Positions 1 through 27,400 are shown, numbered from the stretch's first letter. The stretch: 64,000 nucleotides of DNA from Schmidtea polychroa (GCA_044892525.1 CM097887.1:78346397-78410396); one strand, 5' to 3'. Notes: generated from the sequence alone by a model not told the origin. A program made the numbers and translations.

Positions 1-2170
1 CATAGTGATCATTATTCCCACTATTATTATAACAATGACTATTGTTAATTAAACTGAGAACAGATTCTGGAAATTCCTAATTTGCAGCTAAATTGTCATG
101 TGTACGAGAAAACGAAAGAGAACTCTCATATATTCAGTCGAAATTATTTCATGCAAATCCAAATTCAGTTCCAGCAATTCCCTCACCAAAGAGAAAGCGC
201 ATACCCAGCCTCGACCGGAGAAAAACAAGCGAAATTGTTTGCGGTGATTGAAAGGCGCCAGAATAATGTGTCAAATAAGTAATCATTTAAAATACTAAAA
301 TGTATAGGAAAGAACTAACAATATTTTCATTTCATCTTGTTATAATTGATTTTTGGTGTTATTAAGTGAAAATTTCACTTATTTGAGCTTAATTTTCTCT
401 ACTATTCGTATTAGTTTCGAATTTTGCGAAATTGTTTAGAAATTTATCAACGGAGAATTAAACACGGTGTAAGCATATACCATGGAATGCCCATGAATCT
501 AAGGAACTTCGGTGCATTAGAAGTCTCAGAAATAAAGCTCGCATCTTATTAGTGGCACAGAACCAAAATTGTACTCGATAGGTACATAGTAGTTACAATT
601 CTTATGTTCGATGTCAAAGAGAAAAGTGAAGATATTATTCAAGTGATTATTAATCTGTTGGACTAAAACCGAGAATTGAGAGTTTGTTTTAATGAATCGG
701 AAATACATAACATAAAAACCGCACCAAGTTAAATTAAAATTCATGATCATACACCAAATAATACAAAATAAAGTACTGTTGAAGTCTGTAAGTTAAAATA
801 AATTTAAATGAAATTTAGGTTGGTAATTTAAATAAAAAGTAAGTGAAGAAAAAAGACAAATAAAAGCGTGATCATGCACAGAATTGATAGTAAAGGAAGG
901 TACGATGGAAGCAGTATTAGGAAAAATCCGAGAAAAATCAATAAATTGTAAAATCATCGAAATCGAATTAGGAAAACGGGACAGCTATAGATTAGCTAAT
1001 GGTCAACAAGATGATGATTAGGAAGTTATCAAAAAATGGTTAGGAAGGGTCGAAAACCATTCAAATGTGTTAAAACAGAAAACGTTAATTAATTAATTAA
1101 TTGGCTAATAGAAAACCCGAGCCAATGGAGAACCCGAGATATGAAGGAAACATAAGCTGGGCAAACAAAGAGAAAAGAAAACAGAAGGAAGATTTGGGTC
1201 CATTAGCGTGACACAATGATTAATTGGAAAAGAGCAAAAAGAAGATGGTGGGTTCAGAAAGGCCGGATGGGCCATTAATTATCTTCGTTCGTTGGACCAT
1301 TATGGGTGACAGCGGAAGCAAATATGTGGATTCGAATGTCAAGTGAGAGATTGGCTCGGCAATAACCATTTGTCATCCCGATATCGAAGAGTATACAAGA
1401 AATGGGGAAATCAGAGCCAATCGGCATTTTGCCTCAGTTAGGGTAAGAAGAAACGAGACTAGGCGAAAGATGAAAACTAATTAAAGAAATTAGGGAAAAG
1501 AAGATATAGAATAGGAATACGAAAAGGTGAAAAAGGATCGAATCAAAGAGAAAAAGGAAGACGTTGGTCGAGAGAACCTAAGGAAATAAAAGTTGAATAT
1601 TATATTTTGTCAAAGCATCAACGCCGTGCTGAGAATCGGTCAAACTTAACTTTGATTATTGATTGTTTATTTTTGAGCATATTTTGTGATACAAATATAC
1701 GTTGGGTAGTTCATTGTTTGATTAAAAGGACACGAGGAGTCAGAGGTTACCGACTTAAATTAACTAAAACCCAACAGTACATAACACATTGAGAATAAAT
1801 AAAACACATATAATAAAATAAAGGAACGCAAGAAGTTGCAATCACTAACACAGTTAAGAGAAAAATAAAGCATTCAAAAAATCTATTAATTAGAAAAATA
1901 AAAGAATAATAAATAAATTTAAAATTGAAACTAAAAATATTTCCAGTAAAACTGATAAGAATTAAAATAAAATTAGTTAAAATTATGTAAATCATGAAGT
2001 TGATAAAATTAAACGATTGAAATTAATAAAAAATTAAAATAAAACTAGCTAAATATATTTAAATTATAAATTTATAAAATTAAATTGTGATTTTGATTAA
2101 TTAAATTAATTAAATTAAAAAATAAATAATTACATACACTCATGTGTGTGCAAAAGAAATTCAAATCTAC

Positions 2171-3049
2171 TGCATTCTAATTGGATACACCCGTTTGCAC
2201 TGAATAAAACGCATCTAAGATATGGGTTGGTATGTACAACCAATTAGAGATGCGTCATTATTTATGATGGAATATTTTGGAATGCATTTGGTTAATTTAA
2301 CTACATGCATTCAGTTTAACTACTTATTTAGCTATTTTATATAGGTATTTTAACTATTTGTATTTAGCAATTTTAGAAATGGCTTTCAAGTAATGTTTTT
2401 TATTTAAAGTAAATTTTAAGACTTGAATTTCGATCCATATAGATATGAGATCATTATTCAAGCTCTTAAATATTACTATTTATCAACATTTTTATTATTT
2501 ATAATTAAATTTCAAGGTTTTTAACATTTTGATGAAGTTTTTTAGAATTATTTCGATATAATGTAAGTCAGATATATTTTTAACTATAAATAAACATTTT
2601 TAAAGGCATTTATTAGTCGAATTTTGTCATATTCTATTAAAAAGACTAATATTAAATTTATTAAAAATTGAAGATTAATCTTACGAAATAATGTCTTTAT
2701 TATCTATACAACTGAAAGTTGAGTTTTCGGAATTTTCGTCAAAATTTTATCGGTCATTTTTTTGTAAAAATTTCTAAAAATGTCTGTAAATGATTTATTA
2801 TAGTGCGTTTATTCATTACAACGATTCTACATATCGAAAATTTGTATGTATTTTTCAATATGTGTTGTGTTTTTGCGTGTCAGTTTATTTTTTCTATCAC
2901 TTTCTTACTTTCCATATTATTCATTGCAACGCTAAAAATCAACACACAGGTAAGTTTGTATGTTTATATAATATACACGTATTGATTTTATTTTTACATT
3001 ATAGATGCATTTGTTCACTGCAAACGAGTGTATAGTAGCAGAGAATGCA
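2171..3049. repeat. Pair of imperfect ~47-bp inverted repeats (2171-2217 / 3002-3049), possibly ends of an old non-autonomous DNA element
   Basis: Reverse complement of 2171-2217 (tagatgcgttttattcagtgcaaacgggtgtat..agaatgca) aligns with 3002-3049 (tagatgcatttgttcactgcaaacgagtgtat..agaatgca). No TSD found. Confidence 0.55.
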
Positions 3050-3959
3050 TAGGCGTGCAGTCGAAATCGGTATAAATACCGATGGAAAATTCATTTAATT
3101 TAACCAGAACAACAACAACACTAAAACTAACTTCAGCTTAATTAAACTGTTTATGCAGCTCTCAGTTTTTCGTTTCATGCCATCGGGGTAAGTTGGATTT
3201 GATTTTAGTAATTTCATGTAAAGTATAATTTTATATTGGTCATAATTTTATGTAATGTCATGATTTAATAAAACTTTATATTCAATTCAATTTAGTTAAT
3301 TTTTTGTCTTGTTCTTTTTATTGTTTATTTTGGTTTTTTTTAATTTTAAGTAATATTCATAGTTTACACGAATGTTATTCGATTTGATTTTTATGAATTT
3401 TGGATGGACAGCGGATGTTTCAATAGTTTGGAGTATTGTTTTAAATAGAGGTAACAGAGGACGGGTCCCTCACCATTATTTTGATAAATTTTATGGAGTT
3501 AGGAGCGGCGATAGAGTAACTGAGATCGATTGGAAGTAGATAAGGTTCAGTTTGGGCAATACTATAAAATATATGAGTGGTTAGGGTGTTAAGTAGGTTC
3601 AGAATTGAAAATATAAGCAGTTCCTTGCTCAAAACCTTTAAATATAGGGTGAATATTCACAGGTATTGTATAGAATAAAAGAATCACATTTATTAACTCA
3701 AAAATAACGGCGAATCCCTGTGAAAAATTTTGGGAGATGACATTAGAAGCATCTAGTAGTGAGGGCCATAATTACATGAATCAGCAACAATAATCTCAGA
3801 AAAGTATAGATAATGACGTAAAATCTTCTATCGGCAGTCTAGAACCCGAAAATGAAAATATCATGATAAGCAGTTTTAGCGATAGAACTCACCTGCTCAT
3901 GAATTTTCAACCACTGTGTACATCACCAACATGGTCATCGCCATGGGTACACAGATGGT

Positions 3960-5409
3960 ATAAAGACAATAATCATGAATGATGGGCAAACAGGTTATGT
4001 TAATTGATCTTAAAAATGCTTATCTTCAGATACATGTTGATGAAGACCTATGGGAGTACCAAAGGGTTAGTTACAAAGGGAACGGATACTTTCTAACGAG
4101 ACTCGGTTTTGGTTTAAATGTGGCTCCGAAAATAATGTCAACAATATTACGGAAGGTACTGAATTTAAGAGAAGATATCAGGAAAGCAACGGATGACATT
4201 GTCTAAATTATTGTTGACATTATTGTCAACCAGTCAAGAATAAACGTCAATTAAGTAATAAGCCATTTAGCAGCATGCGGGCTAATCAAAGCCATCGGAA
4301 GAGTTCGATGATGCAAGAGTGCCAGGTCTCCAGTTTCAAACAAGTATTAACGGTCATACGTGGCATCATAAAACATTTTGCCACACAGTGCGTTTACAAC
4401 TATATTAAGAAGGGAGTTATTTTCCCTCTGCGGTCAACTCGTTGGGCACTATCCCGTTGCTGGATGGTTAAGTGTAGCAAGTAGCTATATAAAACGACAC
4501 AGTGTTGGAAGTAAGTGGGATGATACGATTGGAAAAATCACGTTAAAAATGGTTAACGAAATGATGTATCGTGTGAAAGAGAGCGATCCCGTGACTGGTG
4601 AGTGGCACTTAAACAAGGACGGATCTACGATTGTCTGGTGCGATGCGAGCAATCTTGCATTAGGAGTTGCGTTAGAAATATCAGGAGAAATCGTCGAAGA
4701 TGCATCATGGATGAGGAAGAAAAAAGATTTTACTCATATAAACATTGCAGAATTAGACGCTGTTATAAAGGGAATTAACTTAGCTATCAGCTGCGAAAGA
4801 AGCAACTTAGTTGTAGTAACAGATTCTGCTACCGTCAGGAGTTGGATAGATTCAGTTTTAACGGATACTGCCAGAATCCGAACTCATGGAATTGCTGAGA
4901 TGCTAGTCCGAAGACGTCTGCAGATCATTTGTGAATTACGAAAAAGCTATGACTTAACGATCTCAGTTGAGTTTGTCCCGACAGATAAAACAAAGCAGAT
5001 GCACTCACAAGAGTCAGTAATAAATGGCTAAGATGGGTTAAATCGTGTGTCGAACCAACTGCAAGCACTGTTGCTGTTGTGAGCCAAGTGTTCCGAGAAA
5101 GTCATAGACAGCACCATTTCGGTGCCAAGAAGACGTTGTATTTTGCAAAGCAACTTTGCCCGGACGTTACACTTGAGGAATTAGTGAATGTTCAGAATGT
5201 CAATCTATCGATCCGGCGCCTGTAAAACGGGAGCATGGAGAGTTAAGCGTCAGTGGAGAACAACGACGATGATGGATTAACAGACGTAGGCAATCCTACA
5301 CTCAACTCACTTCGCCGAGATGAACGTAGAGGCAGGACGAAAAGACCTCGATATCTCGATGATTTTGAAACCAGTTTTATCGAGAACGAAGATGAAAATC
5401 ACGCGGAGA
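3960..5409 (+). mobile_element. Degenerate Ty3/Gypsy-type LTR retrotransposon pol (RT-RNaseH-integrase zinc finger; core deleted)
   Basis: ORF 3979 has RT motif IDLKNAYLQI..RLGFGLNVAPKIM. ORF 4378 has RNase H VWCDAS..HINIAELDAV..TDS. 5100-5250 reads H-HHFG..C..CQSIDPAP (HHCC) across a frameshift. The pol tail RRDER..RPRYLDDF is followed by TGTAA at 5410. Confidence 0.85.
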
Positions 5410-5600
5410 TGTAATTGCATAGTTAAATTTGTTTTAATATGCAGATTTGTGATAAAAATAGAATTTAAAAAACGTTGTGATTTCCTTGTGTCAATAAAAC
5501 TACAGAAATTATACAATATTTCATAAAACTTGGAATTATGACGTTAACTTTTGAACCGGATTTTAAAAATAATTTAGAAGATGTGTCAGCAGCTTCTAAA
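5410..5600 (+). mobile_element. LTR-like segment (TG..CA, 5410-5523) followed by the 5' end of a gag related to the element at 16.5-20.8 kb
   Basis: 5538 ATG ACG TTA ACT TTT GAA CCG GAT TTT AAA AAT AAT TTA GAA GAT GTG (MTLTFEPDFKNNLEDVSAASK) matches minus-strand ORF 20322-20561 ([21 protein letters not shown]). Both are preceded by tggaatt. Confidence 0.75.
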
Positions 5601-5887
5601 ATATTGAACTAGTCACTGTGTAAGGAAATTTTGAAGATTAAGCACTATAAAAAATAAATAAAAAATATTTAAATAATAAAATAAAATGTAAAGTAACTTT
5701 TCCACATATTTAATTTAGTTTGAAAAAAAATGCTTGATATAAAACACATTACAAATCATACAATACAAATTAAAATGATAAAAGTTAAGTTCTTGTTTAA
5801 GTAATACCAAATTTCAAGGCCATCATAACTTAAGATTGAACATTATTTGCTACATAATGAATTTCAAATTGTAATTTTCGATAACTA

Positions 5888-6463
5888 ATGTTTTTAAATT
5901 ACAAAATGCATAATTCTCAGAGCATGCCAAATAAAATTAAAGATGACCTTGATATAAACAATATCAAAAAAGATAAAAGTGAAACAAAAATTGTTCGTCA
6001 AGAAAGTTTGCGGTATATTCTATATTATCATAAAAATATTTGAATATTTTATTAATTAGTGCTATTAATATGCCCAGACCTGTAGTAGCTTCGATAAACG
6101 AATTTGTCATAAATCAAGGAGGAAACCGCCCCATTAAAAAGGTAATTAAATCGTAATTTCTATTAAAGTTAAGTAATTCATAAATAACTCATGTTAAACA
6201 TTTGCTTTTTCTAGATTCTAATTGCTAACAATGGCATAGCCGCAGTGAAATGCATTCGATCTATACGAAGTTGGGCCTATGAAACATTTAAGGACCAACA
6301 TGCAATCCGTTTTGTGTGTATGGTAACTCCAGAAGACACAAATGCGAATGCTGAGTATATAAAAATGTCAGATAAAATCGAAACGGTTCCCGGAGGATCT
6401 AATCAATACAATTACGCCAATGTCGATTTGATACTCGATGTTGCCCTCCGCACTAAAGTTGAT
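5888..6463 (+). CDS. ACC: ACC exons 1-3 (N-terminal extension and start of biotin carboxylase domain)
   Basis: Exon 1 5888-6012 (in-frame ATGs at 5888, 5906, 5924; stop just upstream) reads ...KIVRQESLR. Exon 2 6060-6141 [20 protein letters not shown]. Exon 3 6215-6463 [13 protein letters not shown]...RTKVD. Introns 47 and 73 bp. Exons 2-3 are certain; exon 1 is inferred from the open frame and splice phase. Confidence 0.85.
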
Positions 6464-9400: not shown

Positions 9401-12400
9401 TTAATTCTTATCGTAATGAATATAAATGAAATTTCAAAGAAAAAAAACAGATCAAACGTAAACGAAAAATAAATAATTTTACTGATAATTCTTTGCATTT
9501 ATAAACCAAAATTTATGCTAGTTTTTTTCAATATTAATTTTTTGTTCTAGTTTATTGATTAATATTTTTTAAATTAAAATTTTTAGATCAATTTTCCGTA
9601 AAACCTTCTACCTAATATCTAAAATCAAACACGTTCGATTTATTACACTAATTATTAATATAGAATCTCATTTGTCTTCATTTAGTTTATGATTGTGGAT
9701 CTATGTTCCTTTTATAGTCAAAAACTTCATAAAATTCTCAATGAAATAAACTTCAATAATTAATAAAACGATAAATTATATTACATTAAATCTCACCTGG
9801 TCATTTATTATATTGAATTATTTAAACCCTGACCCTAACATTACCAATTTTTTGGTTTTTTTTCTGAATTTTTACTGTCTATATTAGTATCCGATTGAAA
9901 CATTGGCGTTCGTTTTTTTATCTGTATTCGTTTCAATAACGCATTATTGGGAATAAATTTTAAGGACTTACTATTCCTATCCAACCTTCCAGTCCGGTAA
10001 AGTATGTTCTAGAATCTTCAAATAGGCAGCGTCATTCATTGGAAATGGACGGATATCCCGCATCATATAATTTGCGTAAAATTGCCCCCGATATTCCTCA
10101 AGATCTATATTATCAAGCTTGCGTATCAGATCCGAATGAAGCTTTAGAAAAAGCCACCAAAATTGGATTTCCTATAATGATTAAAGCATCAGAAGGTGGT
10201 GGAGGAAAGGGTATTCGTAAAGCATCAAGCTCGGAGAATTTTCAAAGCTTATTTATTCAAGTCCTAATATTAGATTAAATTTAGAAATATAAAAAAGTTT
10301 TAGGTTCAAAATGAAGTCCCAGGCTCCCCTATATTTCTAATGAAATTTGCTGACCATGCTCGGCATCTGGAAGTTCAAATCCTAGCCGATCAATATGGCC
10401 AGGCCATTAGTTTATTCGGAAGGGATTGTTCTGTTCAGCGTAGGCATCAGAAAATTTTAGAAGAAGCTCCTGTAATTGTGGCTCCTGAAGAGGTCTTTGA
10501 ACAAATGGAAAAGGTAAATAAAATTTAATATGATATCTATGTAAACTACGAGTGTTTATTAGTCATAATAATATTTAATAAATGCAAATTCTTAAACATA
10601 TGCAAAAAACTGGAACGCCCCATTAGTTTCACACTTTGATATTGTATTAGAACTAATTTCCCACATAGCTTTTAATTAAAAAAAATATTTTAATAATAAA
10701 ATCAGTAAAGTATTTTACTTTTTTTAGTTTCAATTTACTTTTTATCTAGATCAACATTTCACATTTAACGAGAAAAAAGAAAAACGACTTTGGAAGGAAA
10801 AACAAACAATAAACCTATGGTGAAAAGATAAATAAGAAAAATATTTAATTATTTAATTAAAAAATAAATGTGCAAAAAAATTATAAAAAAGCCTGTTAAC
10901 AACGGTAAAACTGTGATGAAAGGAGAAAAATAAAATCTACTAAAAAAGAAAAAATGGGTGTTCTGAAAAAAGAATAGAAAACTTTTCTTGCGAATGAGGC
11001 AGAATTTTTCTATTAATTATTATAGCTGTAACTTAATTTGGAAATCACATAGTTTCAAATGATTAAANNNNNNNNNNNNNNNNNNNNNNNNNNNNNNNNN
11101 NNNNNNNNNNNNNNNNNNNNNNNNNNNNNNNNNNNNNNNNNNNNNNNNNNNNNNNNNNNNNNNNNNNNNNNNNNNNNNNNNNNNNNNNNNNNNNNNNNNN
11201 NNNNNNNNNNNNNNNNNNNNNNNNNNNNNNNNNNNNNNNTAGAGGTATTTAAGGCAAAAACATTGGATTTTTAGAAAATGGTAAAAACGATTCTATCAAT
11301 GGGGTTTTGATATCTATCTTACTTCATTATGTTGAAATATTTTATCCACATCAAACTCGCTCGAACGTTGACTGAATTAAAACATAAAATATAAATGGAT
11401 TAAATAACATACACCGGAAAATAGTTCATGATTAGTACAATTACCCGCAATGAGAGCAGTTATACTGATAAATTAAATGCCATGCATTTATAATGGACTG
11501 TAAACAAATAATTTAACACACCCTTTGTGGGAATAAACATTTTTGTTATTCATATAATTAGTCTATCTACAATATTCTGACGTAGTTTCATGTATTGTTA
11601 TTTATTAAAAATAATTAATACTAATGCTATCAGAGGAAGTAACTCTTGATCATTAGATTTTCTAAACAGACTGTAAGTATGGTTTCCATCTGTCACGGTT
11701 GAGTTATTGTTTTTATCAAATACTTGTTATAATTCCTAATTATTAGAGCTATATTTCTCGTTACCTCCATAGTTTATTTCATCCACAGTATTCGACATTT
11801 CCAAATTGAATCTGTTATAAGCAGGCAATTTGAACATAATATTGAAGTAGAATTTTTATGTGGTTGCATGGAAAATACACCAATATGTAATTAACTAAAA
11901 ATTCTGTACACTTTTTTCATCACGATGTTTGTAGATAAAGCCGAGTGTATTTCTCTTTTTGCACCGTGATTTTGATTATTATATTCACTGTCCCAATTTG
12001 CAATGTACGTATATTGTATTTTTGTTTTCTAAGTATATTAATTATTCCTTTTTACGACTCTGATATTTTTCCTTCGAAGAACTTATCGTTAACTGTATTT
12101 AACATACGTCATAACAATATGCACATCATATTTGGGGTTGCGAGAGGTATTTGATTTTCTACAAAGTTTCATACAAAAAAAACTAATATGACTAATAAGT
12201 AACAATTGTTTGGAAACACTAAATCCTGATATGAATATAAAATTTCCTCTTTTACAGTCAGCAATCACACTCGCTCAAATAGTTGGTTACGTCAGTGCTG
12301 GCACTGTCGAATATCTTTACGATATGAAAACGCAAAAGTTTTTCTTTCTTGAACTCAATCCTCGCTTACAAGTAGAACACCCCTGCACCGAAGTTGTTAC

Positions 12401-15400
12401 TGATATCAATCTACCAGCATCTCAGTTACAGGTTTATTATCCTTTGATTTATTTGCATATTTATATAATTGAATTAGATCGCAATGGGCATTCCATTACA
12501 TAGAATTAAAGAGATTCGTGAATTATATAAAGAAGATCCTACTCTTCTTAATAAAATTGATTTTAATAATCCTATACAAAAACCACGACCAAATGGGCAT
12601 GTGATTGCAGTTAGAATAACATCGGAGAATCCCGATGAAGGCTTTAAACCGAGTCCAGGAATTATGGAAGAACTTAATTTTAAAAGTAATCGTTCCGTTT
12701 GGGGATACTTTAGTGTTAGTTCTGTTGGAGGAATACATGAATTTTCAGATAGCCAATTTGGGCATTGCTTTTCTTTTGCCGAAACCAGGGAAAAAGCAAG
12801 AGAGTAAGCGTTTTTTTTGTTTTTATAATGAATAATAAAAATATTTTATTAATTAAAAAAAAATTGTTTCAATATAATTTAATTTAAAGTTATCTAAGCA
12901 TTATTAATTTTAACAATGATAGAAAATAATTGAAGTTGGACAAATAAAACATTAAAATCAATTATTACTTTATTAATTATTTTACAAAGCTTATTTATAT
13001 ACTGTTTTCGCTGCTCATTCGTTTTCACTTTTCGACAAAACTATAAAAATATACTTATCTGAAGAAGCGTATTTTTTTAGATATAATTCTACGAAATTGG
13101 AAGTTTGTTTTTGAGACTTATTTATCTTCATTGCAAACCCTATGTTAATTGGCGATTATATACATACCCGTGAAGTTGCACACACGTGAAGTTGACTTAT
13201 TATATACATTAGGACATTATGCAGGTAGGTTTTCCTAATTTTCATGTAAGTTATATCTTTTTCGCGACAAATAGGAAGACCGATATCTATGTCTTAAAAT
13301 GACTGTCTGCCCATGACACATCTAATAATGAATCGCTTTTTCAGTCTATCAGAACATCAATTCTTAAATATTGATGAGATCCTAGAATCATAAGCCTTGG
13401 GTGATTCATAAAATCATGTATTTTTCCTTTTCATTATATCCTATAATTTATGAGATTAATATTTTTTGTCTAGTAATTCTAAAAATATTTCAATTTCATA
13501 GTTGCATTTCACATTTGTAGAAATATGGTTCTTACACTCAAAGAAATGAGTATTCGTGGAGATTTTAGAACAACAGTTGAGTACCTTATAAAAATATTAG
13601 AATCGGAAAACTTTATAATGAATGACATTGACACCGGGTGGTTGGACTATATGATTTCACAAAAAGTGCAGGTATACAGTTGCTAATATTCCTTCAATCA
13701 ATCCTAATTTACATTATTTCAGACCGACTCTATCGATCCAACTTTAGCGGCAATGTGCGCTGCTATTCATATTGGAAATGATAAGTTAATGCGCAGCTTC
13801 AGCACTTATCAAATACTAATTGAAAGGTAAATTTGTTAATAAATAAATAAATTATATTAATTATAATTATTGAATATTCTAAACAAGTTTATCACACCCA
13901 GCGCTGTGCCACCCTTTGGTAAGATTTTACAGTATTAGGAGTGTATTTTTATTGACAGGTGTATTTTCGCATTTTCTTTTAAACTATTTTTGAAACTATT
14001 TTCATAAACACGACCTGTAAGACGCAGGTAAGAAACAACTCAATATTTAATCAGAAATATCCTATTTAAATAAATTATTTAATATATTGATAAACATTGG
14101 CAAATAATTAAGATCATATTTCTTAGACGTCAAATATCTAAGAGCCAAAAGCTGACGAATATTGTCGATGTGGTACTCATTCATGATTATTTAAAATATA
14201 AAATTCAGGTTATTTACTTTTATTTTACGCTTATTTATTCAATATTACTATTATTCATCCACGTTTTATTGTTTACGCGTTCNNNNNNNNNNNNNNNNNN
14301 NNNNNNNNNNNNNNNNNNNNNNNNNNNNNNNNNNNNNNNNNNNNNNNNNNNNNNNNNNNNNNNNNNNNNNNNNNNNNNNNNNNNNNNNNNNNNNNNNNNN
14401 NNNNNNNNNNNNNNNNNNNNNNNNNNNNNNNNTATTTTTAACCAATGAGAAGTAAGAAAAAGGAAATAAGAGAGACGACCAAAGAGAATTTTAAAAATAG
14501 AAGACGCTAAATTCCATGAAATTGAAAAGGGCTATCTTATAGTCGAAAATATTTTCATTTGTATTAAATATATTATTCGCAGCAAAGGGCTTAAATTATC
14601 ATTTAATTTTTTTTTCAATTTAATTAATGCTGCTACTAAGTAATCATCACTTTATACTTATTATTAATATTAATCATTTTAATTATTATTATTATTAATC
14701 ATCAATTTATATTATTATTTTTTATTATCTATTATTAGTATTAGTTTTTTTAATTGTTAGTATTTTTATTTTTATTTTACTATTATTATTTTCATTATTA
14801 TAAAATGATAATTTCTTGGTAGCAGCATTAATTAAATATTAAACAAATAAATGATAAGATAAGATTTTTGCTGAAAAGTACATACTGAATGAAATGAAAT
14901 AATTGTCTATATATTAAATGTCGAACCCATATCTTACGCAAAAATTTTTTTATTCTACACAAAGAAACAAAAAGCAATAAAAACACCAAAATATTATATA
15001 AAAAGCAATTAAATAATGAAATTTAATTATTGTTTTTCTAAATTATCTTTTTCAGCCTATTTTTACAAACCACCATGTGATTTTCTTCATTCAAATCCGA
15101 TTTTAATCTAAAAGACTCGTTTCCAACTCTTTCTACTATTATCCAACTTCCTTCTTCATAAAAATCTTCCATTTTTCTTTTTCTTGTTTCTGTGTTTGCA
15201 TCAAAAGATTTCTTAACCAAGACACGCTCTCCAGAATTAAAAGTAATAGAATGATAGTGAACATCTGCATCACTCACCATTCTTCTGGTATATCTGTTTC
15301 GATAATTTTGGTCAACCAGGCTTTCTCGAATAATTTCACTATTTGATTCAGCATTAATGCTTTCATTTTCATTGCTATTGCCATTATTATTGGTGTTTAA

Positions 15401-18400
15401 ATCCCCAACTAGATCAGTATATTCATCTGATTCAACTAAAAGTGAATTTTCATTATTAATATTTTCCAACAATAAATTTTCTCTCATTTCGCTTCTTTGT
15501 CTTCCTCTAAAAGCATTCATTGGTGTCGTGTTGATTGCTCTATGCCATGTTGTATTATATTTAAAGAATTTCATCATGAATGTCAATCCATCTTTTTATT
15601 GGCTGTGCCGATAGACATTTTGCCATTTTTTTAACAATGGTTTGATTCACTCTCTCTACCTGTCCTTGATTTCTTGGATGCCGAGGTCTTCCACGCACAT
15701 GCTGGATTGTTTTTTCAATGAAAAAGGTTCTTAGAACCTGATTGACAAATTCTCTTCCATTGTCCGTTTGAATTCTTCTTGGAGGTCCTTCAAGAAAATA
15801 TACCTGTTTAAAAGCTCTGCTAACACATTCTGCAGATTTTTGCTTTAATTTAAAGGAATATAAAAATTTGGAATAAGAATCTAGGATATTCAAAATCCAT
15901 CCAAATCCATCATTGTCTTCTTGATAATTGCGCATATCTACACAATCCATCTGTACCAATTCCCAGGGAAACTCCGAGATTATTGGGATTATAGGTACAA
16001 CTCTTGGTAATGGCTCGTGTCTCTTGCATATTAAACAAGAAGATACATATCGCGTTATTCTTTCCCTTTTGAAGCCCGCGTACAAGAGTTTTGAGTTTTC
16101 ATACATTGCTTTCATCCCAATGTGGTCAGGGAGATGCAATCTTTCAAATAAATTGTGCAGGCCAACTTCATCATCATTTGCAATGATTTCTTTGTTACAT
16201 TCTCCTGATTTTAGATAAAGCTTATTTTCCACTTCAATAAAGTTTTCAGCTTTCTTTAATTAAATCTATAAATTTGTATTAGTAATTTTTTTATTTTTGC
16301 GTAAGATATGGGTTCGACATTAAATATCGATGTATTTTTTTGATATTCACGAATTTTCGGCACAAGCTTTTTCAAGTGATCAATATAAAAATATACATGG
16401 TATGTTCGTGAACTTGTACCAAAGAGTTCAAGAACATCTAGACTCTGGTGGAAAATTCTCGGTATACAGACATCTCCAACATTGTCAATCAAGAAAGGAA
16501 AGAAAAAATATTTTAATTAAAATATTCAAAAAATGTCATATTTGAATAGTGTTTGGAATAACACATTAAAAAAACAACCATTAAACATCGTAAATAACCT
16601 TAAAACGAATCTTAAAACTACGATTTTGATATTATGCAATAAGTTAATTTAATTAATTGTCTAATATTTATTTATCATTCTTCCTTACATCCCCCTCATC
16701 TTTTAAAAATCTTGAGCCACTATGTGTTTCGAATAATTTCATTCCTGTCTACGCCCCGCAAGTTATTTCATGAATCTGATCTATAGTTTCATACGGCCCT
16801 TGGTAACGTTTATCCATCTTTCTTACGCTTTTTTCACGCTTTACTCATACACAGTCTCCAATCTTGAAATTTCTAGAGGTTATTGATATTTTATTTGCTT
16901 CTTTTTTTTGTTTATTTGTAATTTCTCGAATTTCTTTTCTTTTGTCAATATTGATATTTTTTGAATTCATATTTTTCGTTTCAGTCTATTATCAGCATAT
17001 CATACGAACAAATACTATTTCTGTAGATGAAAATCAACATTTGGTAATACTTCTGACCAATCTATATATATTTTTTCTTTTAACTAAATGGCTAAAGATC
17101 TCCTTATAGTTTTGAATTGTGTATCTACTAACCCATTTGTGTTATCATGATAAGGGTTTCAGTATCTTATTTTAATATGATGTGAATTCAATAATTCCAA
17201 CAGTAACTGAGATTCAAATGTTTTACTTTTATCCAAACGAATTGTCCTAGGAGCTTTTAATTTCAATATCCAGTTTTCTCTTAAAACTTTAGCTTTTAAA
17301 TTTTTATCTTGATGTGCCACTGCTGCTAAATATATATGCTAAATTGATCAATAATTGGCAAAATATATTGTTTATGTTTACCATAACTGCATCGGTGAAT
17401 TGCTTTATAAACATTTCCTTGATTTTCTCGATGTTGTCTTCCGCTTAAGCATTCAACATAGTTTTTCAAAATATTCTTGACATCTTCATTAATATCTAGA
17501 TTTAAAATTTTCTTTTAACACGTTGTTTAATACCACCATGACACAACTCTATGCAAATCATTGATTAACAAGTCTTTATTTTTACTTCGTTTTCATTTTT
17601 CTTTGAATCATCAATTGCTAACATCTTTGTTTTATTCTTTTTTGATTTCGCGTCTTCATGATTAGTCTGACATTAATTGCATGTTGTACAATTATTCCTC
17701 GATAATGCATCCGTATTTTCATGTAACTCATCTTTTCGACAATCCAACGTTACAATACACTTAAATAATTTATCCACTCTTGGAACTTTGTCTTAATCAT
17801 AAATAGCCAAACGAAAATTGATTCAAACAAATACAATTCGGTAAGTTTAATTAGTTCGTGTAGCCTTTCTTTTTTGACAATAGTCGCATGACCCGACTAT
17901 TTCTTTAATAAATTCGTGTCTGTTTCTCATGTTAAATTTTCTAGAAATATATTCGTGGACTTTATTTACCCGAGCATGACACAAAATTTTATGGGTGTAC
18001 AAAAGAAATTCTTTTTTCTTTCGCCTGGAATCGATATTTTGCCTTGATTGAATAATGTCATTATTTTCTAAAAATTAAGTAATAAGACCCATATAGCTTC
18101 TAAAACTCTTGCCTTTTTTGCGTATTATTTTACAAATCTTCTGTAGTAATTGCATATTCCTAGGAAGCTTCTCAGATTCTTAACACATTTTAGCTTTTCA
18201 AATGATTTAATCGCGTCTAGCTTTGATTGGTCCGCCTGTATCCCATCTTTGTTGATTATGAAACCTAAAAATTTGACTTCCTCTTTAAGGATATGGTACT
18301 TTTCAGGGTTTATTCTAAGACCCGCCTTTCCAATTTCATTTCCAGCACTTCATTTAAAACTTCGTAGTGGTGATTGATCGTTTCTGTAAATATCAAAATA

Positions 18401-21400
18401 TTGTCTAGGTATACTGCTGCATATCTCGTACCCATTAATACTTTTCCCATCAGTTCCTTAAATGTACCTGGTGCCGCTGCTATTTCAAATGGCATTCTGT
18501 TAAAACAGTATTGACCTGATTTGATTGAAAACGCCGTTTTTAGCTTTGATTCATCTTCTAGTTCTACTTGATAATATGCATTTCCAAAATCTATCGAACT
18601 GAAATACTTTGCTCCACCCAATTGATCTAACATCTCTGCTATATTCGGCATAGGGAACGCCTGTCTCTATGTTACTAGGTTTAATTGTCTGAAATCAAGA
18701 CATAATCTGATATCTTGCTTTTCTTTCTTCCAAACGCATATTAATGGAGTGTTCCATGGCGAATTACACTTTTTGATAATATCGTTTTCCCATAAGTTTT
18801 TATCGCTTCATCTATTTTACCTTCCAAGTTGACAGGTTGTCTCCAAGGTTTAATATTTATCGGTTTTCCTTGAGTTTCTATTTTATGCTTCAACAACTTT
18901 GTGCAGCCAATGTCCCATTTATCAGACATAAAAACATTTTGATTCTTTTTTACAATGTTCAGTAATATAAGATTATTTATCTTTAAAGTATTCTTTGCTT
19001 TTTGAAATCGTTCCATCTCCGTTATTGTCTTTCCAATTTTGGCTTCGATACTGCATATGTGCTCTTGCTTCGTTTTCTTGACCTCTTCTACTGGCCATTT
19101 TAGTTGTATACCAAATTGTTTTTGCAACTCTATACCATCAATTACCTCTGGAGTCATATATCGTACTATCATAAACTTTACCCTTCTTTTCCTGGCATTT
19201 ATTCCTATTTCTAATATTGCTTTAATTTCGCTTCTAAAACACTATTATTTGCACATCTCAAAGTATCAGTCGTTGTTGTTAGTTCTACATCTTTAAGTTT
19301 CTCAAATTTACTCTAACTCATGACATTTACTGTAGCTCCTGTATCGAGCAAGCATTCCATCTTCTGGTCTTGTATTATAATAGTTACACTTGGTCAGCCT
19401 TGCATTTTATCATAACTAATAATATCATTTTTCCATTCATCTAAGGTGAGTATTTGTATATTTTCTCTTTCTCTTTCTGCCAAATCCTTTTTTATGAATC
19501 TGTTTACTTTCCTTATTACATTATTTTCCTCTTCCGTTACCTCTGTATCTTTCACATCTTTTTCTATAATACATGATATTTTACTTTTATTATAATATTT
19601 AATAATTTGGGTGTCAGCATCACTGTTTAATACACTACCCCGACTATCTTCTCTTCTATCGGGGCGTTGATATTTGGGTATTCTCTGTATTTATCTTCTA
19701 TTCTTTCATCACTTGGTTCGTCTATGAATATATTGTCTGCTTGTCTTGTTTCCTTTCTCGTTCCTTGATAACCATTCCCTGCTTCGTATCGTTCTTGTTG
19801 TCTTCCAAAATTCTAATTGATTCTCTGATATCTCATTCTCTCCAAATTTGTGTAAAAATCTGCCTCTTTATGACCTCCCAAGCTACACCTCGTACACCTT
19901 ATTTTTTGACAATCTCTTCTCACGTGTAACCGCGTTTCTGTAATTTCTTGTTATATTCTGTTCTGGTCTTCTTTCTCTCACTGTGTAGATCTCTTCTGCA
20001 ACTATATGAGATTCATGTAACTTATTGATTTTTTTCTTCACTTCCATTGTTCTTTTGGTGTCGCTTGGACACAATTCTCGTTTCAAAGTCTTCTCGGCTG
20101 CACAGTGAACCAGCAGATATTCTGTTAAACTTTCCTTGTTTAACTCATGCCCCAATATTTTATCGACTAACTATGATAGTAAAATATTTATCGGGCTCTT
20201 CACTCGTCTGTCTATAAGACATAGCAGATTGTAAATCCTTTGCCAAACTTGTTTTTTTGACGAATGCCTTCCGCAATCGTTCCTTATAACATTTGATATT
20301 TTGGTCAACTCCTGTATATATCTATCTGATCTGTTTGTCAATCAGTAATTCGATCATCACTTCTTGTTTTGAAGTAGGCATTTGTAACATTTTAAAATAT
20401 CTATCGCATTCTTTAATGAATGTTTCAACATCATCTCCTCTATGATAATCGTTTGGAAATCGCTTCTTTATGAAGAAATCCATAGACGTGGTCGCCATAT
20501 TAGAAGCTGCCAACACATCTTCTAAATTATTTTTTAAATTCGGTTCAAAAGTTAACGACATAATTCCATCTATTTATTATATGACATATTTTATAATTTT
20601 AAACAAATTTTCAGCGTTGAAAATATTTTCAAAACCATTTATCAAAGTATATTTATTTAAAAATTTTTCATTAATAAAACTTCTTTTTTAAAAAGCTATT
20701 TTAATTTTTAATTCAAAAATTTCAACTTAAAAAATCCAATTTAAAAATTATTTAAAAGTTATTTTAATAGTCAATTATTTACAATTTAAAATTATTTTGA
20801 TAAATCATTGAAATATTTAATTCTCAGCTAAAAACACCTCACAGTTATCATACAGTATCGAAACTAGCATCCGTGTCTAAAACAAAGTACTTTAGTTAAT
20901 CCGGAGATCCCAGTATCGAAGTTGATACCAGGAAGGTTTTGAAACTTGCTTCACATTCTTTTGCCCATATCAGCTTTTCTTTATTTGTCCCACATAAAAT
21001 TTCTAGCATATTTTTCATATTTGACTAACTTTCTATAATAATTCGCTAATCCCAAAAAACTTTTCTATCGTTTGATACACTATGGCTTTAAGTATTCCTG
21101 CATTACTTTAATTTTTATATTATTTTTCTATATCTCCTAAAAATTTTAACCCTTCTTTATTAAAAGGACATTTTTCTAAACCTTTTTTAATCCTGCTTTA
21201 ATTTTTTTTTAAACTCTTTTCAATAGTTTTCTGTTCTTTTTCATTATTTGCGAATATGTGAATATTATCAAAGTAAACCCTGCTTCTTTTCAGAGAAAAT
21301 CACCCAACACTCCGGCCATTAATTTTTGAAAAGTAGCTGGAGCAGTTGCGATTCAAAAGGTATATGCGGTTTAAACCATATTGGTCACATTTTGTAGAAA

Positions 21401-24400
21401 AGGCTTTTTTAAGTTTCGATTATTCTTACAGTTCCACATGGTAATATGCATTACCAAGATTAATAGTATACCAATCATTTCGTAAATATTTGGAATGGAA
21501 AACCGATGTCCTTTCCATTAAAGCATTTATTGGCTTAATGGAAAGACATGACATTCTTATATCTGACTTGTTTTTATTCAAAATACATACTAATGGACTA
21601 TCTTTTTGAGCATTTTCCCTATTGGCACATTTGTGGTTTCTGGTTGCGGTTAAAATGATTTTAATCTAATAGTCAATTAACCTAATCTACAGACTAATCT
21701 AATCTAAACCATAACCTTAACACTAAAATCCTAACCATAACATAAAACCAGTTCTTTTTCATTCCACCTGCCCTCATTAATATCACCATTCTTTCCATTT
21801 TGTCAAAGAAAATTAAAGATAAATCCGTATCCTTCTGCTAGTTCTAAATTTCTAAAAAATCGCGAATATGCAATGCTGCTTTCAAAAATTCCCCTCATGA
21901 TTGTTTTTCAAATCCTCGGCCTTTTCTTCAGTATCTTCATATATTGTCAATTAATCTCTTTTTATAAGACATTTCTCCATAGTGCTTCTATTCGATTTAT
22001 CCGATTCACATAAATCAAAATATTGCTTTTAGTCAACGATGTGCTTCTAAATTTTCATGTCCTTGATAGATTAATGAGATCATACATTATGCCATCTGCA
22101 TTTTTGGAATTGTATTAGAAATATTTATTTAATTATAAAGTTGTCAACAAAATATTCAATTATAAAATTATAATATTTTGACGAATATAAATTAATATAA
22201 ATAATCTAAATTAATATAAATAATCTAATAATAATAATAATATTTCACGTAAATGTTTTATAAATAAGATATAATACTAATTAATAATTTAATATTCATT
22301 ACAACTATAGTTGAAATTAATATACCTAACAATCTATTAGTTAGGTATACTTGACTACAATTTTATAATTATAATTATAATTTCAATTTAACTTTAAAAA
22401 ATCTTTGCATCATAATATAAAATTTTATTGATTGTTGAAATAAAGATTTGCAAAACTGGGCCGATTGCATTCCATTTGATAATGAATAATGCATCAGTAG
22501 AATCAGAAGTTCATAAATTATTAGATGGATGCTTGCTTATTACATACGGTAACACGAGCTATACCACTTATCTTAAAGAAGAGATATATGGATATCGAGT
22601 GATAATTGACAATAATACTATTACATTTGAAAAGGAAACTGATCCATCTGTTTTAGTGTAAGATGAGTTCAATTTCAATAAAATTTCACTAACACATTAC
22701 AATTAGTTCTCCATCAACTGGGAAATTGGTGCAGTATACAGTCGAGGATGGCAGTCATGTATTTGCCAACAGTGTATATGCACTAATGGAGGTCATGAAG
22801 CTGACCATGGAGTTGCATACAACAGCATCTGGGTGTATTCATTATATTAAACGTCCCGGTGCTATACTTGATGCCGGTTGTCATGTAGCCACATTGACCC
22901 TTGATGACGCTGTCAATATCAAAAGGGCGGAAACATATACGTATGAATATTAAAATACTCAATACAATTAATGTTTCATCAGGGAATCATTTTATACGTC
23001 TAATCAGACCGCATCAGTTGCCAAGCTAAACCAGGTTTTTGATAAGTGTGTTAAAGAATTGGAACAGATTCTTGATGGATATTGTTTACCAGAGCCTTAT
23101 TTTACACCGAAATTACAGAAAACAGTTAATCAATTTATGGCCTGTCTCCGGGACCCCAGATTACCTCTAATAGAATTACAGGTATTTTGAATATTAATTG
23201 GCTAGATAAACAAAAAAAGTGATTTAATAACAAATTTGATCTTTCGTGGTATTTTATCAGGAGTTGATGTCACAAATCTCAGGAAGAATTCCCAGTACTG
23301 TCGAACGAGCAATAAAACAACAAATGTCAATTTATGCTAGTAATGTTACATCAGTTCTCAGTCAATTTCCTGGGTCAAAGATTTTACATATCCTCACAAA
23401 TTGTGGAAATAGCCTTTCCAAACAATCAGAACAGGATAATTATATGATGATTACACAGCCTATATTCTCTTTGGTAGGAAAATATACCAAAGGTGTTCGG
23501 GGTCATATGAAAATGGCGATCGAAAATTTATTTATTAAATATTATAATGTTGAGAAACTTTTCCAGGAAGGTAATTATGACATATTATTTAATATTTTTT
23601 TGAAAAATTTAGTAATTACCATTTCCGATATCTGACGAAAAATATCTTCAAACCGACACTTATATAGGAAACTAAAATCAACAAAGACAATTTTATCTTA
23701 AATCCAAATATAAAATGCAAATTGTCATTATTCTACACAATTTATTAAAATATCTTATACATTTAAAAATTTAACATTAATGCAGACATTAACATTAATC
23801 ATCGACCATAAATATTTTTAATTGATTTAAATATACAGATTTTATTTAAATTTGAACATTTTATTTTTAATTTTAAGTATGAAAATATGAATCCACAGAT
23901 TGAAATAAAGATAGATTAAATCCAATCGCAACTCACTTTCAAAATAACATCATATAAAAAAGACAAAAAAATGCCATTTTAGACTATGTACTGAAGAATA
24001 TATCATTAAATAATATCTCCAGTCAGGGCCCGCCCTAGGGCATGCGGGGCCCAAGGCAGCAAACGATGAGCGGGGCCCATTCCCGAGGCAGAAGGCGAGG
24101 AGCAAGACCCATGCAAAAAATTGCATTTCTACATATATTACAATAATGGGAAATAAAAAATTAAATTACTTAAATTGCAACAGAAACAAAACATTTTGTT
24201 CTTAGCTGCTGAATATATAAGCCATTTTCGGTTGACAACATCAACATTTTCCATGTCGTTTGCAGTAGGTTGTAGAAAATTTCCGTCTATTGCTATCTGC
24301 TAGAAAATCTTTTTCTTCAGTTTTTTTTGTCCCATTGCAAACAATTGTAGAACGAGTGTCTACATTCAAATGTTGTTGGGTCACTAAAATCATCATTTAC

Positions 24401-27400
24401 ATTTATCAAACCAACCAACTCTTCTTCATTTGCAGTTGCAGATATCTGTGTTCTTGTAATCTGAGAAGTATCAACAATTCCAACATCAGAAGTATCGATA
24501 ATGGACTCTGTGTTATTTTCATAAGTTGCTGCATCTTTGTATTCTTCAGAAGTTGACGATGTTGACGAACTTTGATGTGTTGTACAAGAAATTTATTGAG
24601 AGATTGTGTTAATTCCTTAATTTGGCTTTCTTGTGTTGCTTTTTGTTTTTTCTTTTCATTGCCGCTTTTATATTTTCTGCCAAAATCGCGATCTCGTTTT
24701 AGTGACATATCTGCTCAACTAAAAAATCAATTAATGGAAATTTTTAAATTCAAATAACAATTCCTATTTAAATCATTTAAAGTTTAAATTTTAAACAATT
24801 CTTATTTAAAGCTAAATAAAGTTAATTAATGAAGAGTTTACATTTTCCATAATGTGCCATTTTATTTTATATTAGTACGCTATTTTTCTAATTATTTTAT
24901 CATGAAAATTAAATATAAAGTTTTCTTGATACTGTTGTTATATAAAAGACAAGTATTACACAATAGTATTAAAATTGTAAAAAGTAGTAAAAATTGTTAA
25001 GTCAAAGCGCGGGGCCTAAAGCGGTTGCCTTGTTCGCCTTTCCCTAGGGCCGGCCCTGTCTTCAGTTGGTTCAGTCTACAGATCGATATTTTATTTGCGT
25101 AAGTAAAAAACACATGATAAAGGCTCTGTTGACATTGATAAAACATAACTAGCTTTTTAAATTAAACAAATGCTTGTTAATATTTTTCTAACGTTAAAAG
25201 TCTTTCATTTCACCAGGTCATCATGATAAATGTGTCAGTATTTTGTTGGAGCAGAAGGATAAAAATCAAAATATAATGAACATAATATTTTCCCACCAGA
25301 ATGTAGCTTACAAAAATAAATTAATCTTGCTACTCATTGACCATCTTGTGGAAAACGAATCTGGCCTTATTAAAGATCTCAATGATGCTTTGGTAAATTT
25401 TACAAATTTGAATAAATCAGAGAATTCCAAAGTATCTTTGCGATCTCGACAAGTATTAATTGCAGCTCAAAATCCTGCTTATGAAGTCAGACACAATCAG
25501 GTTTGTAATTAACATTTTAGACTGACTTATAACGCTTATCTTGTTATTTATTATTTTTTTGCTTAGTTCTTATATTAGTTCTCTATTAGTAATCACATTA
25601 TCGGTTTTTATTATTAGATGACAATAGATCAATAGATATTTAAGGAGAGCCATGATACTTCGTTGACTGATTCTACATATGTTATTTTATAACCTTGTTT
25701 AGTACTAATACTACATATTCTTGCAATTCTAGTTCGACAACATAATTATTTTATGATTGAAATTTTTGACCTTGTCTAAATATGACTTTAAAATTTAAAT
25801 CTATTTTTACAATTATCTAAGTCAGCGCTGTCCAACTTATCATAGCCTTCGGGCCATATTTTCTTCACCAAACATTTTGGGGGCCAAGAAGGTTGATAAA
25901 TGAAAAGTCAGTTTATGTTAATTTAAAAATATTTTATTTATACTGAAAAGAAAACTTTAAAATATTCGTAATATATTAATGAGAACATTGTGGCCGTAAT
26001 TATTTAGTAACAATATCTTTTATATCCACATCAATATTTGTTGTGGCAAGTCTAATTATATCTTCAAGAATGGAATCTTTCAAACTGTTTCTATATTTTG
26101 ACTTTATATATTTCATATCGGAGTATGCACGCTCGCAGATATATGTACTTTCGAACTTTGATACAATTTGAAGTCTAAAATCTCTCAATTTTGGATATTT
26201 CTCTTTATCTAAAAATTTCAATATTTCTATTCCAGTTAGTCCACGAGATGTAAAATATGGGTCGGCCTGCACGTCGCATAATTCTATTTGATATTTAAGA
26301 TCAATGGAGTTTATATCAATATTTATTGGATCACAAAATAAATTAATAGACGGTTTAAGATCATCAAATTGAGAAAATCTTTCATTGAAATCTGTAATTA
26401 GCATATCCAATTTTGGTAGAAATATTTTAAAATTCGCTTCTATATTACATTCTTTCATTTCTCCATAGATCTCTTTGCAAGATTCAAAATGAAATAAATT
26501 ATTTCGCTCCAAATTAAACCTTAGCAATTTTAATTTGTTTCTAAATCCAGTAACATATTTATAAAGACAACACACATTTTGATCTTGTCCTTGCAAGAAT
26601 TTATTCAAATTATTTAAATAATTTGTAATGTCCGTTAAGAAAGCAAGTGAATAAATAAAATTTTTATCAACTAAATTTGCTGTCAAATTTTCATCGACGA
26701 GAGAAAAAGATGAACTTCTTTTCGAAGTGTAAAGAATCTCGTCAAGCACTTTCCAGCACTTAACCAACGAACATTACTATGTAAAATCAGATCTCCATAC
26801 TCAGTTTCCAATTCAAACCTTGTCCATTACGTCTTTTAGTTGTAGGGGTAAACCACATAATGCCTCCTGATGGATAATACAGTGTAAAATACGACATGTT
26901 ATTCATTCTTTTTGCAAAAGTCACGCGAGTCCAATATTTTTGCTCTAGCACCATCGGTTACAATAGCAGTGCACTTGTCAATTCCGCCATACTGCTCTAC
27001 TCCACATTTTAATTGTTTGTAAATATCTTCACCTTTTGTTGTTCAGTGTAATGATTGTAATTTTAAAAGTTCTTCTGAATAATTATAGTTTTCATTTACA
27101 GTTCTTATAAAGATAAGCATTTGACTTGTATCGGAAATGTCTGTGCTTTCATCCAATGCTACCGAAAAATAGCAGCAACTATTGATTAGGTTTTCAAATT
27201 TTTTAGTGACATGCATGCTAATCTCGTTTACACGTCGGTTTACAGTCTGGTGAGAAAGTGATACTGTTTGAAATTTTCTTACCATTTCGTTGTCATTAAA
27301 TGCTTGAGCCATTTTTATGGCACATTTTCTAATTAATTCTCCATCCAAAAATGGCGTCTTTGCCTTTACTTTTTCTAAACAAACTTCAAATGATGCAGCT

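Follow-up and report, generated by a model that had tools for sequence, protein, structure and literature searches.

Does the retroviral-type integrase gene that lies between short inverted repeats in a 64,000-nucleotide stretch of the Schmidtea polychroa genome (GCA_044892525.1 CM097887.1:78346397-78410396; hereafter the window) belong to a transposon in its own right, or is it a piece of a retroelement, foreign DNA or a host gene? The reading that we consider highly likely is that the region represents one insertion of a compact, integrase-only DNA transposon, which lies in or beside the Ginger2/TDD group. A first-pass annotation, made from the sequence alone, had called it Ginger2/TDD-like, and this finds support both in relatives with the same termini and 5-bp target-site duplications (TSDs) and in a tree that groups its integrase with those of elements that are bounded by terminal inverted repeats (TIRs) and lack a reverse transcriptase (RT), and with a KRBA2-like protein.

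The ends of the element (Table 1) read TGTCG...CGACA, and the perfect 27-bp TGT..ACA inverted repeats and the exact TTAAA duplication that had been reported hold at every nucleotide: the two arms match without exception over 27 nt, after which their complementarity ends, and identical copies of the pentamer abut them on either side. They form the sole perfect inverted repeat of at least 20 nt with a spacing of 0.5-5 kb in the 64 kb, and the 27-mer is found at just two sites in the window even if three mismatches are tolerated (0 expected from shuffled sequences). For the TTAAA pair, the probability of a 5-bp match by chance is 0.0023 given the base composition of the window (28% G+C). A search of the window for further copies, using the full TIR as well as its first 14 nt and allowing mismatches, returned the two arms only; likewise, a separate comparison of each flank with the remainder of the window revealed no paralogous empty site. 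The right flank occurs only once in the window and the left one is an AT-rich repeat resembling a miniature inverted-repeat transposable element (MITE). An Rfam scan of the window gave no matches.

The single gene between the TIRs encodes an integrase, which we take as the transposase of the element. The HHCC zinc finger and DD35E core read from the sequence are upheld by a match to the Pfam rve domain, by the spacing of the motifs, and by the invariance of all seven HHCC and DDE residues across 19 aligned family members. The match of the window copy to Integrase_H2C2 falls below the cut-off, and PF17921 is matched by all 19 family members at E<=0.1. Among solved structures, the best relatives of the core are retroviral integrase cores (5.7e-9), followed by the Ty3 integrase (1.2e-5). 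The 'GPY/F-like tail' of the first-pass annotation stands at the level of the fold and not at that of the motif. The last ~100 residues are predicted to form a helix and a five-strand SH3-like barrel (pLDDT 80.8, from a 16-sequence alignment), the top fold matches of which are the C-terminal domains of the Ty3 and Rous sarcoma virus integrases and SH3/Tudor folds, all of them weak (E 0.02-0.1). This domain has 13 invariant columns, and three of the 19 relatives show sub-threshold Pfam matches to Integrase_p58_C. The motif in the window protein reads G-S-W rather than G-P-Y/F, which confines the likeness to the fold. No gag, RT or long terminal repeat (LTR) was found inside 14919-16319, and neither the window protein nor 19 relatives showed a protease domain.

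Two lesions disrupt the gene, one frameshift and one 5' truncation. As had been noted, no in-frame start codon precedes the zinc finger: in 15 of 18 relatives, the protein starts about 35-40 codons upstream of the window frame, so that the copy is indeed 5'-deleted, having lost the start codon along with about 35-40 N-terminal codons. Neither of its two reading pieces contains an internal stop, and together they span the proteins of the relatives contiguously, down to the natural stop. The frameshift, the missing start and the lost codons together show, at the level of the sequence, that the window copy cannot encode the enzyme and is a non-autonomous remnant. It may have arrived already deleted, having been moved by the enzyme of an intact copy, or it may have decayed after insertion. 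At 1.4 kb it is 300-900 bp shorter than related two-ended elements, consistent with the loss of its 5' part. Accordingly, the claim that the element is unusually small needs dividing: the relatives of intact length, at 1.7-2.3 kb, do fall below the published range of 2.7-6.7 kb, but part of the small size of the window copy itself results from the deletion. The suggestion of a recent insertion from a possibly active family is not established by the window, which offers one defective copy whose identical 27-nt arms bound its age only loosely; the 64 identical bases in the ends and duplications constrain divergence only to below ~5%.

Relatives of the element are numerous. Word-based protein searches recovered proteins with up to 69% identity to that of the window, at least 20 of them full-length (403-459 aa) on contigs of 1.3-3 kb, and an exhaustive profile search yielded, at E<=1e-30, 2,660 clusters, of which some 100 are 400-475 aa long and extend over all 441 positions of the profile. 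Those clusters that were looked up are annotated as 'hypothetical protein' or 'transposase InsO family protein', except for polyproteins of Globodera rostochiensis and Cordylochernes scorpioides. Named organisms that carry the family are limited to two microsporidia, Enteropsectra breve and Nematocida homosporus, whose proteins are 39-48% identical to the window protein. The related contigs carry the integrase gene only, and nearly all related elements begin with TGTCG(A/T)ACCC, a terminus shared by at least eight elements of 1.7-2.3 kb on other contigs; the first 10 nt of the left TIR are common to the elements in L001, L002, L006, L007 and L011-L016. The end of the E. breve copy agrees with that of the window at 19 of the first 21 nt, with proteins only 48% identical. 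TIR lengths in the family range from 12 to 89 nt.

Several of these relatives are bounded by exact duplications. They include L001 (1791 bp, 89-nt TIRs, TSD TTTAT), L009 (1703 bp, TTTAT), L011 (2160 bp, ATAAT) and L017 (1986 bp, ATAAA), such that other TIR-bounded copies with TSDs of the expected length do exist. In all, an exact 5-bp AT-rich TSD is present in five of 11 two-ended copies, a proportion far above chance, and further two-ended copies (L008/L010, L012, L014, L015, L016 and L003) have flanks that match nearly or not at all. Plausibly, the non-matching flanks stem from repeat-induced chimeras on short metagenome contigs. The window element is a member of a real and widespread family rather than a one-off.

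The family members display some further features of their surroundings. Among L011, L012, L013, L014 and L016, several copies have common flanks that start with ACAAT beside the TGT end, and the right flank of L014 is the reverse complement of the left flank of L011; such sharing could arise from a preference for a palindromic AT-rich target, from insertion into a different repeat, or from chimeric assembly. The 6.3-kb contig of Enteropsectra breve (L002) has two different integrase genes belonging to this broad group (2059-3282 and 5001-6104) that are about 31% identical, and one of them has a terminus nearly identical to that of the window. The closest two-ended relative, L001, lies on a 24-kb ENA contig amid Merlin (IS1595-type) and Tc1/mariner transposase genes in AT-rich DNA, and its integrase likewise carries one frameshift.

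To place the integrase, 139 integrase domains were compared in bootstrapped neighbour-joining trees over 290 columns; they were drawn from the family, from eight second-tier TIR-bounded metagenome elements, from the KRBA2-like protein and from integrases within long polyproteins. Here, 35 RT-linked integrases form one side of a split recovered in 187 of 200 bootstraps, and the family lies on the other side together with the TIR-bounded elements, the loci L069 and L072 and the KRBA2-like protein, curated references being absent; in this tree, the integrase groups apart from the pol integrases of LTR elements. Both L069 and L072 are RT-free, and all five of the polyproteins checked carry RT and RNase H. 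The second-tier relatives account for most of the matches listed in the metagenome locus scan, with many TIRs reaching the contig ends and true termini readable only for L038, L044 and L017. Two of them, L044 (2655 bp, TGTCGTGCC, TATA(TA) duplication) and L038 (2362 bp, TGTTACGG, TATA duplication), look like classical metazoan Ginger2 elements. As regards L069 (526-5418) and L072 (2-3826), they have very long open reading frames (ORFs; 1631 and 1275 aa), in which only H2C2 and rve are recognisable. Long polyproteins were also considered as close kin of the family, which would have pointed to an LTR origin, and were rejected: their high scores are sums over 2-4 integrase copies, and per domain they amount to 62-122 bits at 23-31% identity.

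How does the family compare with the systems described so far? The Ginger2/TDD elements have HHCC-plus-DDE transposases, TGTNR termini, AT-rich targets, 4-bp TSDs (5 bp in TDD-4/5), TIRs of 45-297 bp and an autonomous length of 2.7-6.7 kb, and have no GPY/F motif (Bao et al. 2010). The window element shares with them the HHCC and DDE transposase, TGTNR...CA TIRs, an AT-rich TSD of 5 bp as in TDD-4/5, and the lack of RT, gag and LTR. Ginger1 elements, in turn, have GPY/F, 4-bp CCGG/CCGT duplications, OTU or Ulp1 protease domains and lengths of 2.6-7 kb (Bao et al. 2010); the family resembles them in its integrase-type transposase, HHCC, DDE, GPY/F-type C-terminal module and TGTNR termini, but differs in having a 5-bp AT-rich TSD rather than CCGG/CCGT and in that no OTU/Ulp1 protease domain was found. 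Thus, the combination of features that had been taken to define Ginger elements is apt for the integrase, TIRs and TSD, but mixes two groups, as GPY/F is a trait of Ginger1 that is lacking in Ginger2. Polinton/Maverick, IS3EU/GingerRoot and IS481EU also use rve-type DDE enzymes as eukaryotic DNA transposons. However, IS481EU, IS3EU/GingerRoot and Polinton are without HHCC (Kojima 2023), and their TSDs are 6 bp in IS3EU/GingerRoot (with mostly TA..TA ends) and Polinton, and 4, 15 or 25 bp in IS481EU, the termini expected across these groups being AG..TC or TA..TA, as opposed to the invariant HHCC, 5-bp TSD and TGT..ACA ends of the family. The Ty3/gypsy and retroviral integrases, which provide the best solved-structure matches of the element, have the same three-domain plan, catalytic residues, TG...CA ends and 4-6-bp duplications; unlike them, the window element lacks RT, RNase H, gag and LTR, and the repeats at its ends are inverted instead of direct.

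Outside the family, the closest protein that bears a name is an ant 'KRAB-A domain-containing protein 2-like', which matches the family profile at E 7e-32 and is 33% identical to the window protein. KRBA2 and SCAND3 are described as derived from Ginger2 (PMC3575427), and this distant similarity raises the idea that the window gene could be a domesticated host integrase of the GIN1/KRBA2 kind. Yet KRBA2 and SCAND3 are host genes without TIRs, and the window gene has a frameshift, no start codon, TIRs and a TSD, lies within an intron in antisense orientation and has many similar mobile counterparts, as expected of a broken mobile-element copy; of all the explanations weighed here, domestication is the one to which we give the least credence.

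Several observations weigh against an assignment to Ginger2/TDD. First, the family is smaller than Ginger2 (1.7-2.3 kb, and 1.4 kb in the window copy, versus 2.7-6.7 kb), its TIRs are shorter (12-89 nt, and 27 in the window, versus 45-297), and it conserves a C-terminal domain of SH3-like fold that contains a G-x-W motif, in contrast to Ginger2, for which GPY/F is described as absent. Second, the per-domain profile scores form a continuum, in which the second tier falls at 120-195 bits, the KRBA2-like protein at 134 and the LTR-pol integrases at up to 122. Third, the tree is a neighbour-joining one on 290 columns and not a maximum likelihood one, and contains no curated Ginger1, Ginger2 or TDD sequences, for which the protein named 'KRBA2-like' and the TIR-bounded metagenome elements serve as proxies. 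Fourth, six of the 11 two-ended copies have no exact 5-bp TSD, and are on short, possibly chimeric metagenome contigs. Finally, the 'cut-and-paste' mode of movement is presumed, as excision chemistry is not established for any Ginger element.

Some of the same observations would be accounted for if the family were a third, independent Ginger-like lineage, the integrase of which was freed separately from an LTR retroelement, an origin also proposed for Ginger1, or represents an older sister of both groups, with TIRs acquired on its own. This explanation, which we regard as improbable, draws on the full three-domain integrase with an SH3-like C-terminus (including the weak Integrase_p58_C matches in three of 19 relatives), which is absent from Ginger2 according to Bao et al., on the much smaller size and shorter TIRs relative to published Ginger2 elements, and on the scores of the best LTR-pol integrases against the family profile, which are only slightly under that of the KRBA2-like protein. 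Against it stand the split from RT-linked integrases recovered in the bootstraps, which leaves the family with TIR-bounded, TATA-TSD elements and the KRBA2-like protein, and the agreement of TSD length, AT-rich target and TGTNR ends with Ginger2/TDD. By the proxies available in a tree from which curated references are absent, a Ginger2/TDD placement fits the family. A narrower proposal is that the family is a distinct minimal lineage, sister to classical Ginger2 rather than inside it, and shared between microsporidia and invertebrates by horizontal transfer; this we put forward tentatively, as rather less probable than its converse.

For an element of the Ginger2/TDD kind, a mechanism can be sketched by analogy. 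The integrase, composed of an N-terminal extension, the HHCC zinc finger, the DD35E core and the SH3-like C-terminal domain, would act as the transposase. Going by retroviral and Ty3 integrases and the Ginger literature, it would bind the conserved TGTCG(A/T)ACCC termini and expose CA-3' ends, which would then be joined to AT-rich target DNA with a 5-bp stagger, and repair of the gaps would give rise to the TTAAA duplication.

The insertion lies within a host gene. One multi-exon acetyl-CoA carboxylase (ACC) gene of animal type spans ~10039-60290 on the plus strand, with exons that, searched one by one, are 57-67% identical to those of insects, molluscs, flatworms and fish; this marks the host as an AT-rich animal rather than a microsporidian or a human. 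Its introns are GT-AG and about 46-48 nt long, apart from several of 6-27 kb that are filled with transposable elements (TEs), and the element sits antisense in a TE-filled ACC intron of ~9.6 kb (12.8-22.4 kb).

This setting bears on the possibility that the element is DNA of a microsporidian parasite mis-joined into an animal scaffold. The sole named carriers, Enteropsectra breve and Nematocida homosporus, are microsporidia, and a run of N (14283-14432) lies 0.5 kb from the left end of the element. However, the 48 kb to its right are joined without a gap and carry the ACC exons of animal affinity, the duplication of TTAAA on both sides indicates that the insertion is genuine, the region is homogeneous in base composition, and identity to the microsporidian proteins reaches only 39-48%. 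We therefore hold such a mis-join to be very unlikely. A second N run is seen elsewhere in the window, such that the two are 11068-11239 (172 bases) and 14283-14432 (150 bases).

The same intron contains a decayed LTR-type retroelement close to the transposon (Table 1), with pol homology over 17030-18965 that is broken into at least seven ORF pieces across all three frames. The statement of the first-pass annotation that gag, RT and LTR are wanting is thus right within 14919-16319 but overlooked an RT and a second integrase zinc finger just outside, in 17030-18965. Could the integrase of the element be the 3' part of the pol of this neighbour, with the inverted repeats being incidental? The RT lies upstream of the integrase on the same strand, in gypsy order. 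However, the retroelement has its own Integrase_H2C2 and core remnants, its pol homology stops at 17030, and no LTR pair was detectable in a search around it; the TIR-bounded gene, for its part, has exact 27-nt arms and an exact TSD, and the same termini enclose integrase-only elements on unrelated contigs. The retroelement thus possesses an integrase of its own, and the window gene its own TIRs and TSD, which makes them separate elements; the transposon reading is not overturned by this neighbour, and there is scarcely any likelihood that the gene is part of its pol.

Other repeats surround the two elements. On the minus strand, a second RT fragment (21364-21581) shares 72% identity with the first RT over 97 nt (18494-18590), and probably represents one more decayed copy of a related retroelement. 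To its left, the transposon is flanked (14433-14918) by an internally inverted, AT-rich repeat of MITE-like type, copies of which (72-88% identical) occur at ~57.8-58.0, 51.7, 48.5, 54.3 and 6.6 kb; the transposon appears to have inserted into this repeat or next to it. Remnants of other TE classes are listed in Table 1.

Table 1. Coordinates of the transposon, its parts and the other annotated features of the window.
Feature	Position	Strand	Remarks
Whole element, TGT...ACA termini	14919..16319 (1401 bp)	-	related two-ended elements 1703-2312 bp
Left TIR, 27 nt, starts TGTCGAACCC	14919..14945	+	0 mismatches to right arm
Right TIR, 27 nt	16293..16319	-	exact reverse complement of 14919-14945
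Left TSD, TTAAA	14914..14918	.	identical to 16320-16324
Right TSD, TTAAA	16320..16324	.	identical to 14914-14918
Integrase (transposase) gene remnant, only gene between TIRs	15038..16259	-	frameshift and 5' truncation
HHCC zinc-binding domain, H-x3-H-x28-C-x2-C	16014..16154	-	Integrase_H2C2 E 0.0016, 18.9 bits, sub-cut-off
Catalytic core, Pfam rve, D-x60-D-x35-E	15675..15962	-	E 2e-14, 54 bits, cut-off 32.6
Predicted C-terminal helix and SH3-like barrel, GPY/F-like at fold level	15041..15340	-	predicted structure and fold matches
ACC biotin-carboxylase exons	about 10.0-12.8 kb	+	
ACC biotinyl-domain exons	about 22.4-22.95 kb	+	
ACC central region	50.1-51.1 kb	+	
ACC carboxyltransferase exons	57-60.3 kb	+	
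Decayed LTR-type retroelement	17030-20561	-	~0.7 kb right of element, same strand
Retroelement gag-like ORF	~20.3-20.6 kb	-	
Retroelement RT	18313-18651	-	RVT_1 1.3e-15
Retroelement integrase zinc finger	17850-18002	-	Integrase_H2C2 1e-6
DUF7047 and RNase H ORF	4378-5031	+	
hAT dimerisation-domain ORF	26000-26767	-	
MULE transposase ORF	32413-33153	+	
DDE_1 (pogo-like) transposase ORF	35688-36299	-	

For the annotation of the genome, the locus is to be treated as a dead transposon copy in an acetyl-CoA carboxylase intron, which should be masked as a repeat and not counted as a gene. Its wider meaning lies with the family to which it belongs. Elements of the Ginger type are the relatives, among DNA transposons, of the integrases of retroviruses and LTR retrotransposons and the source of several domesticated vertebrate genes, and a compact family that has all the integrase domains offers a data point on how integrases shift between 'transposon' and 'retroelement' lifestyles. 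The presence of the family in microsporidia, in an animal and on many environmental contigs bears, in addition, on the exchange of mobile DNA between parasites and hosts. Were the tentative proposal of a distinct minimal lineage to be true, an element of ~1.7 kb, with very short TIRs and one ~440-aa enzyme having the full retroviral domain plan, would be the smallest autonomous DNA-transposon relative of the integrases of LTR elements.

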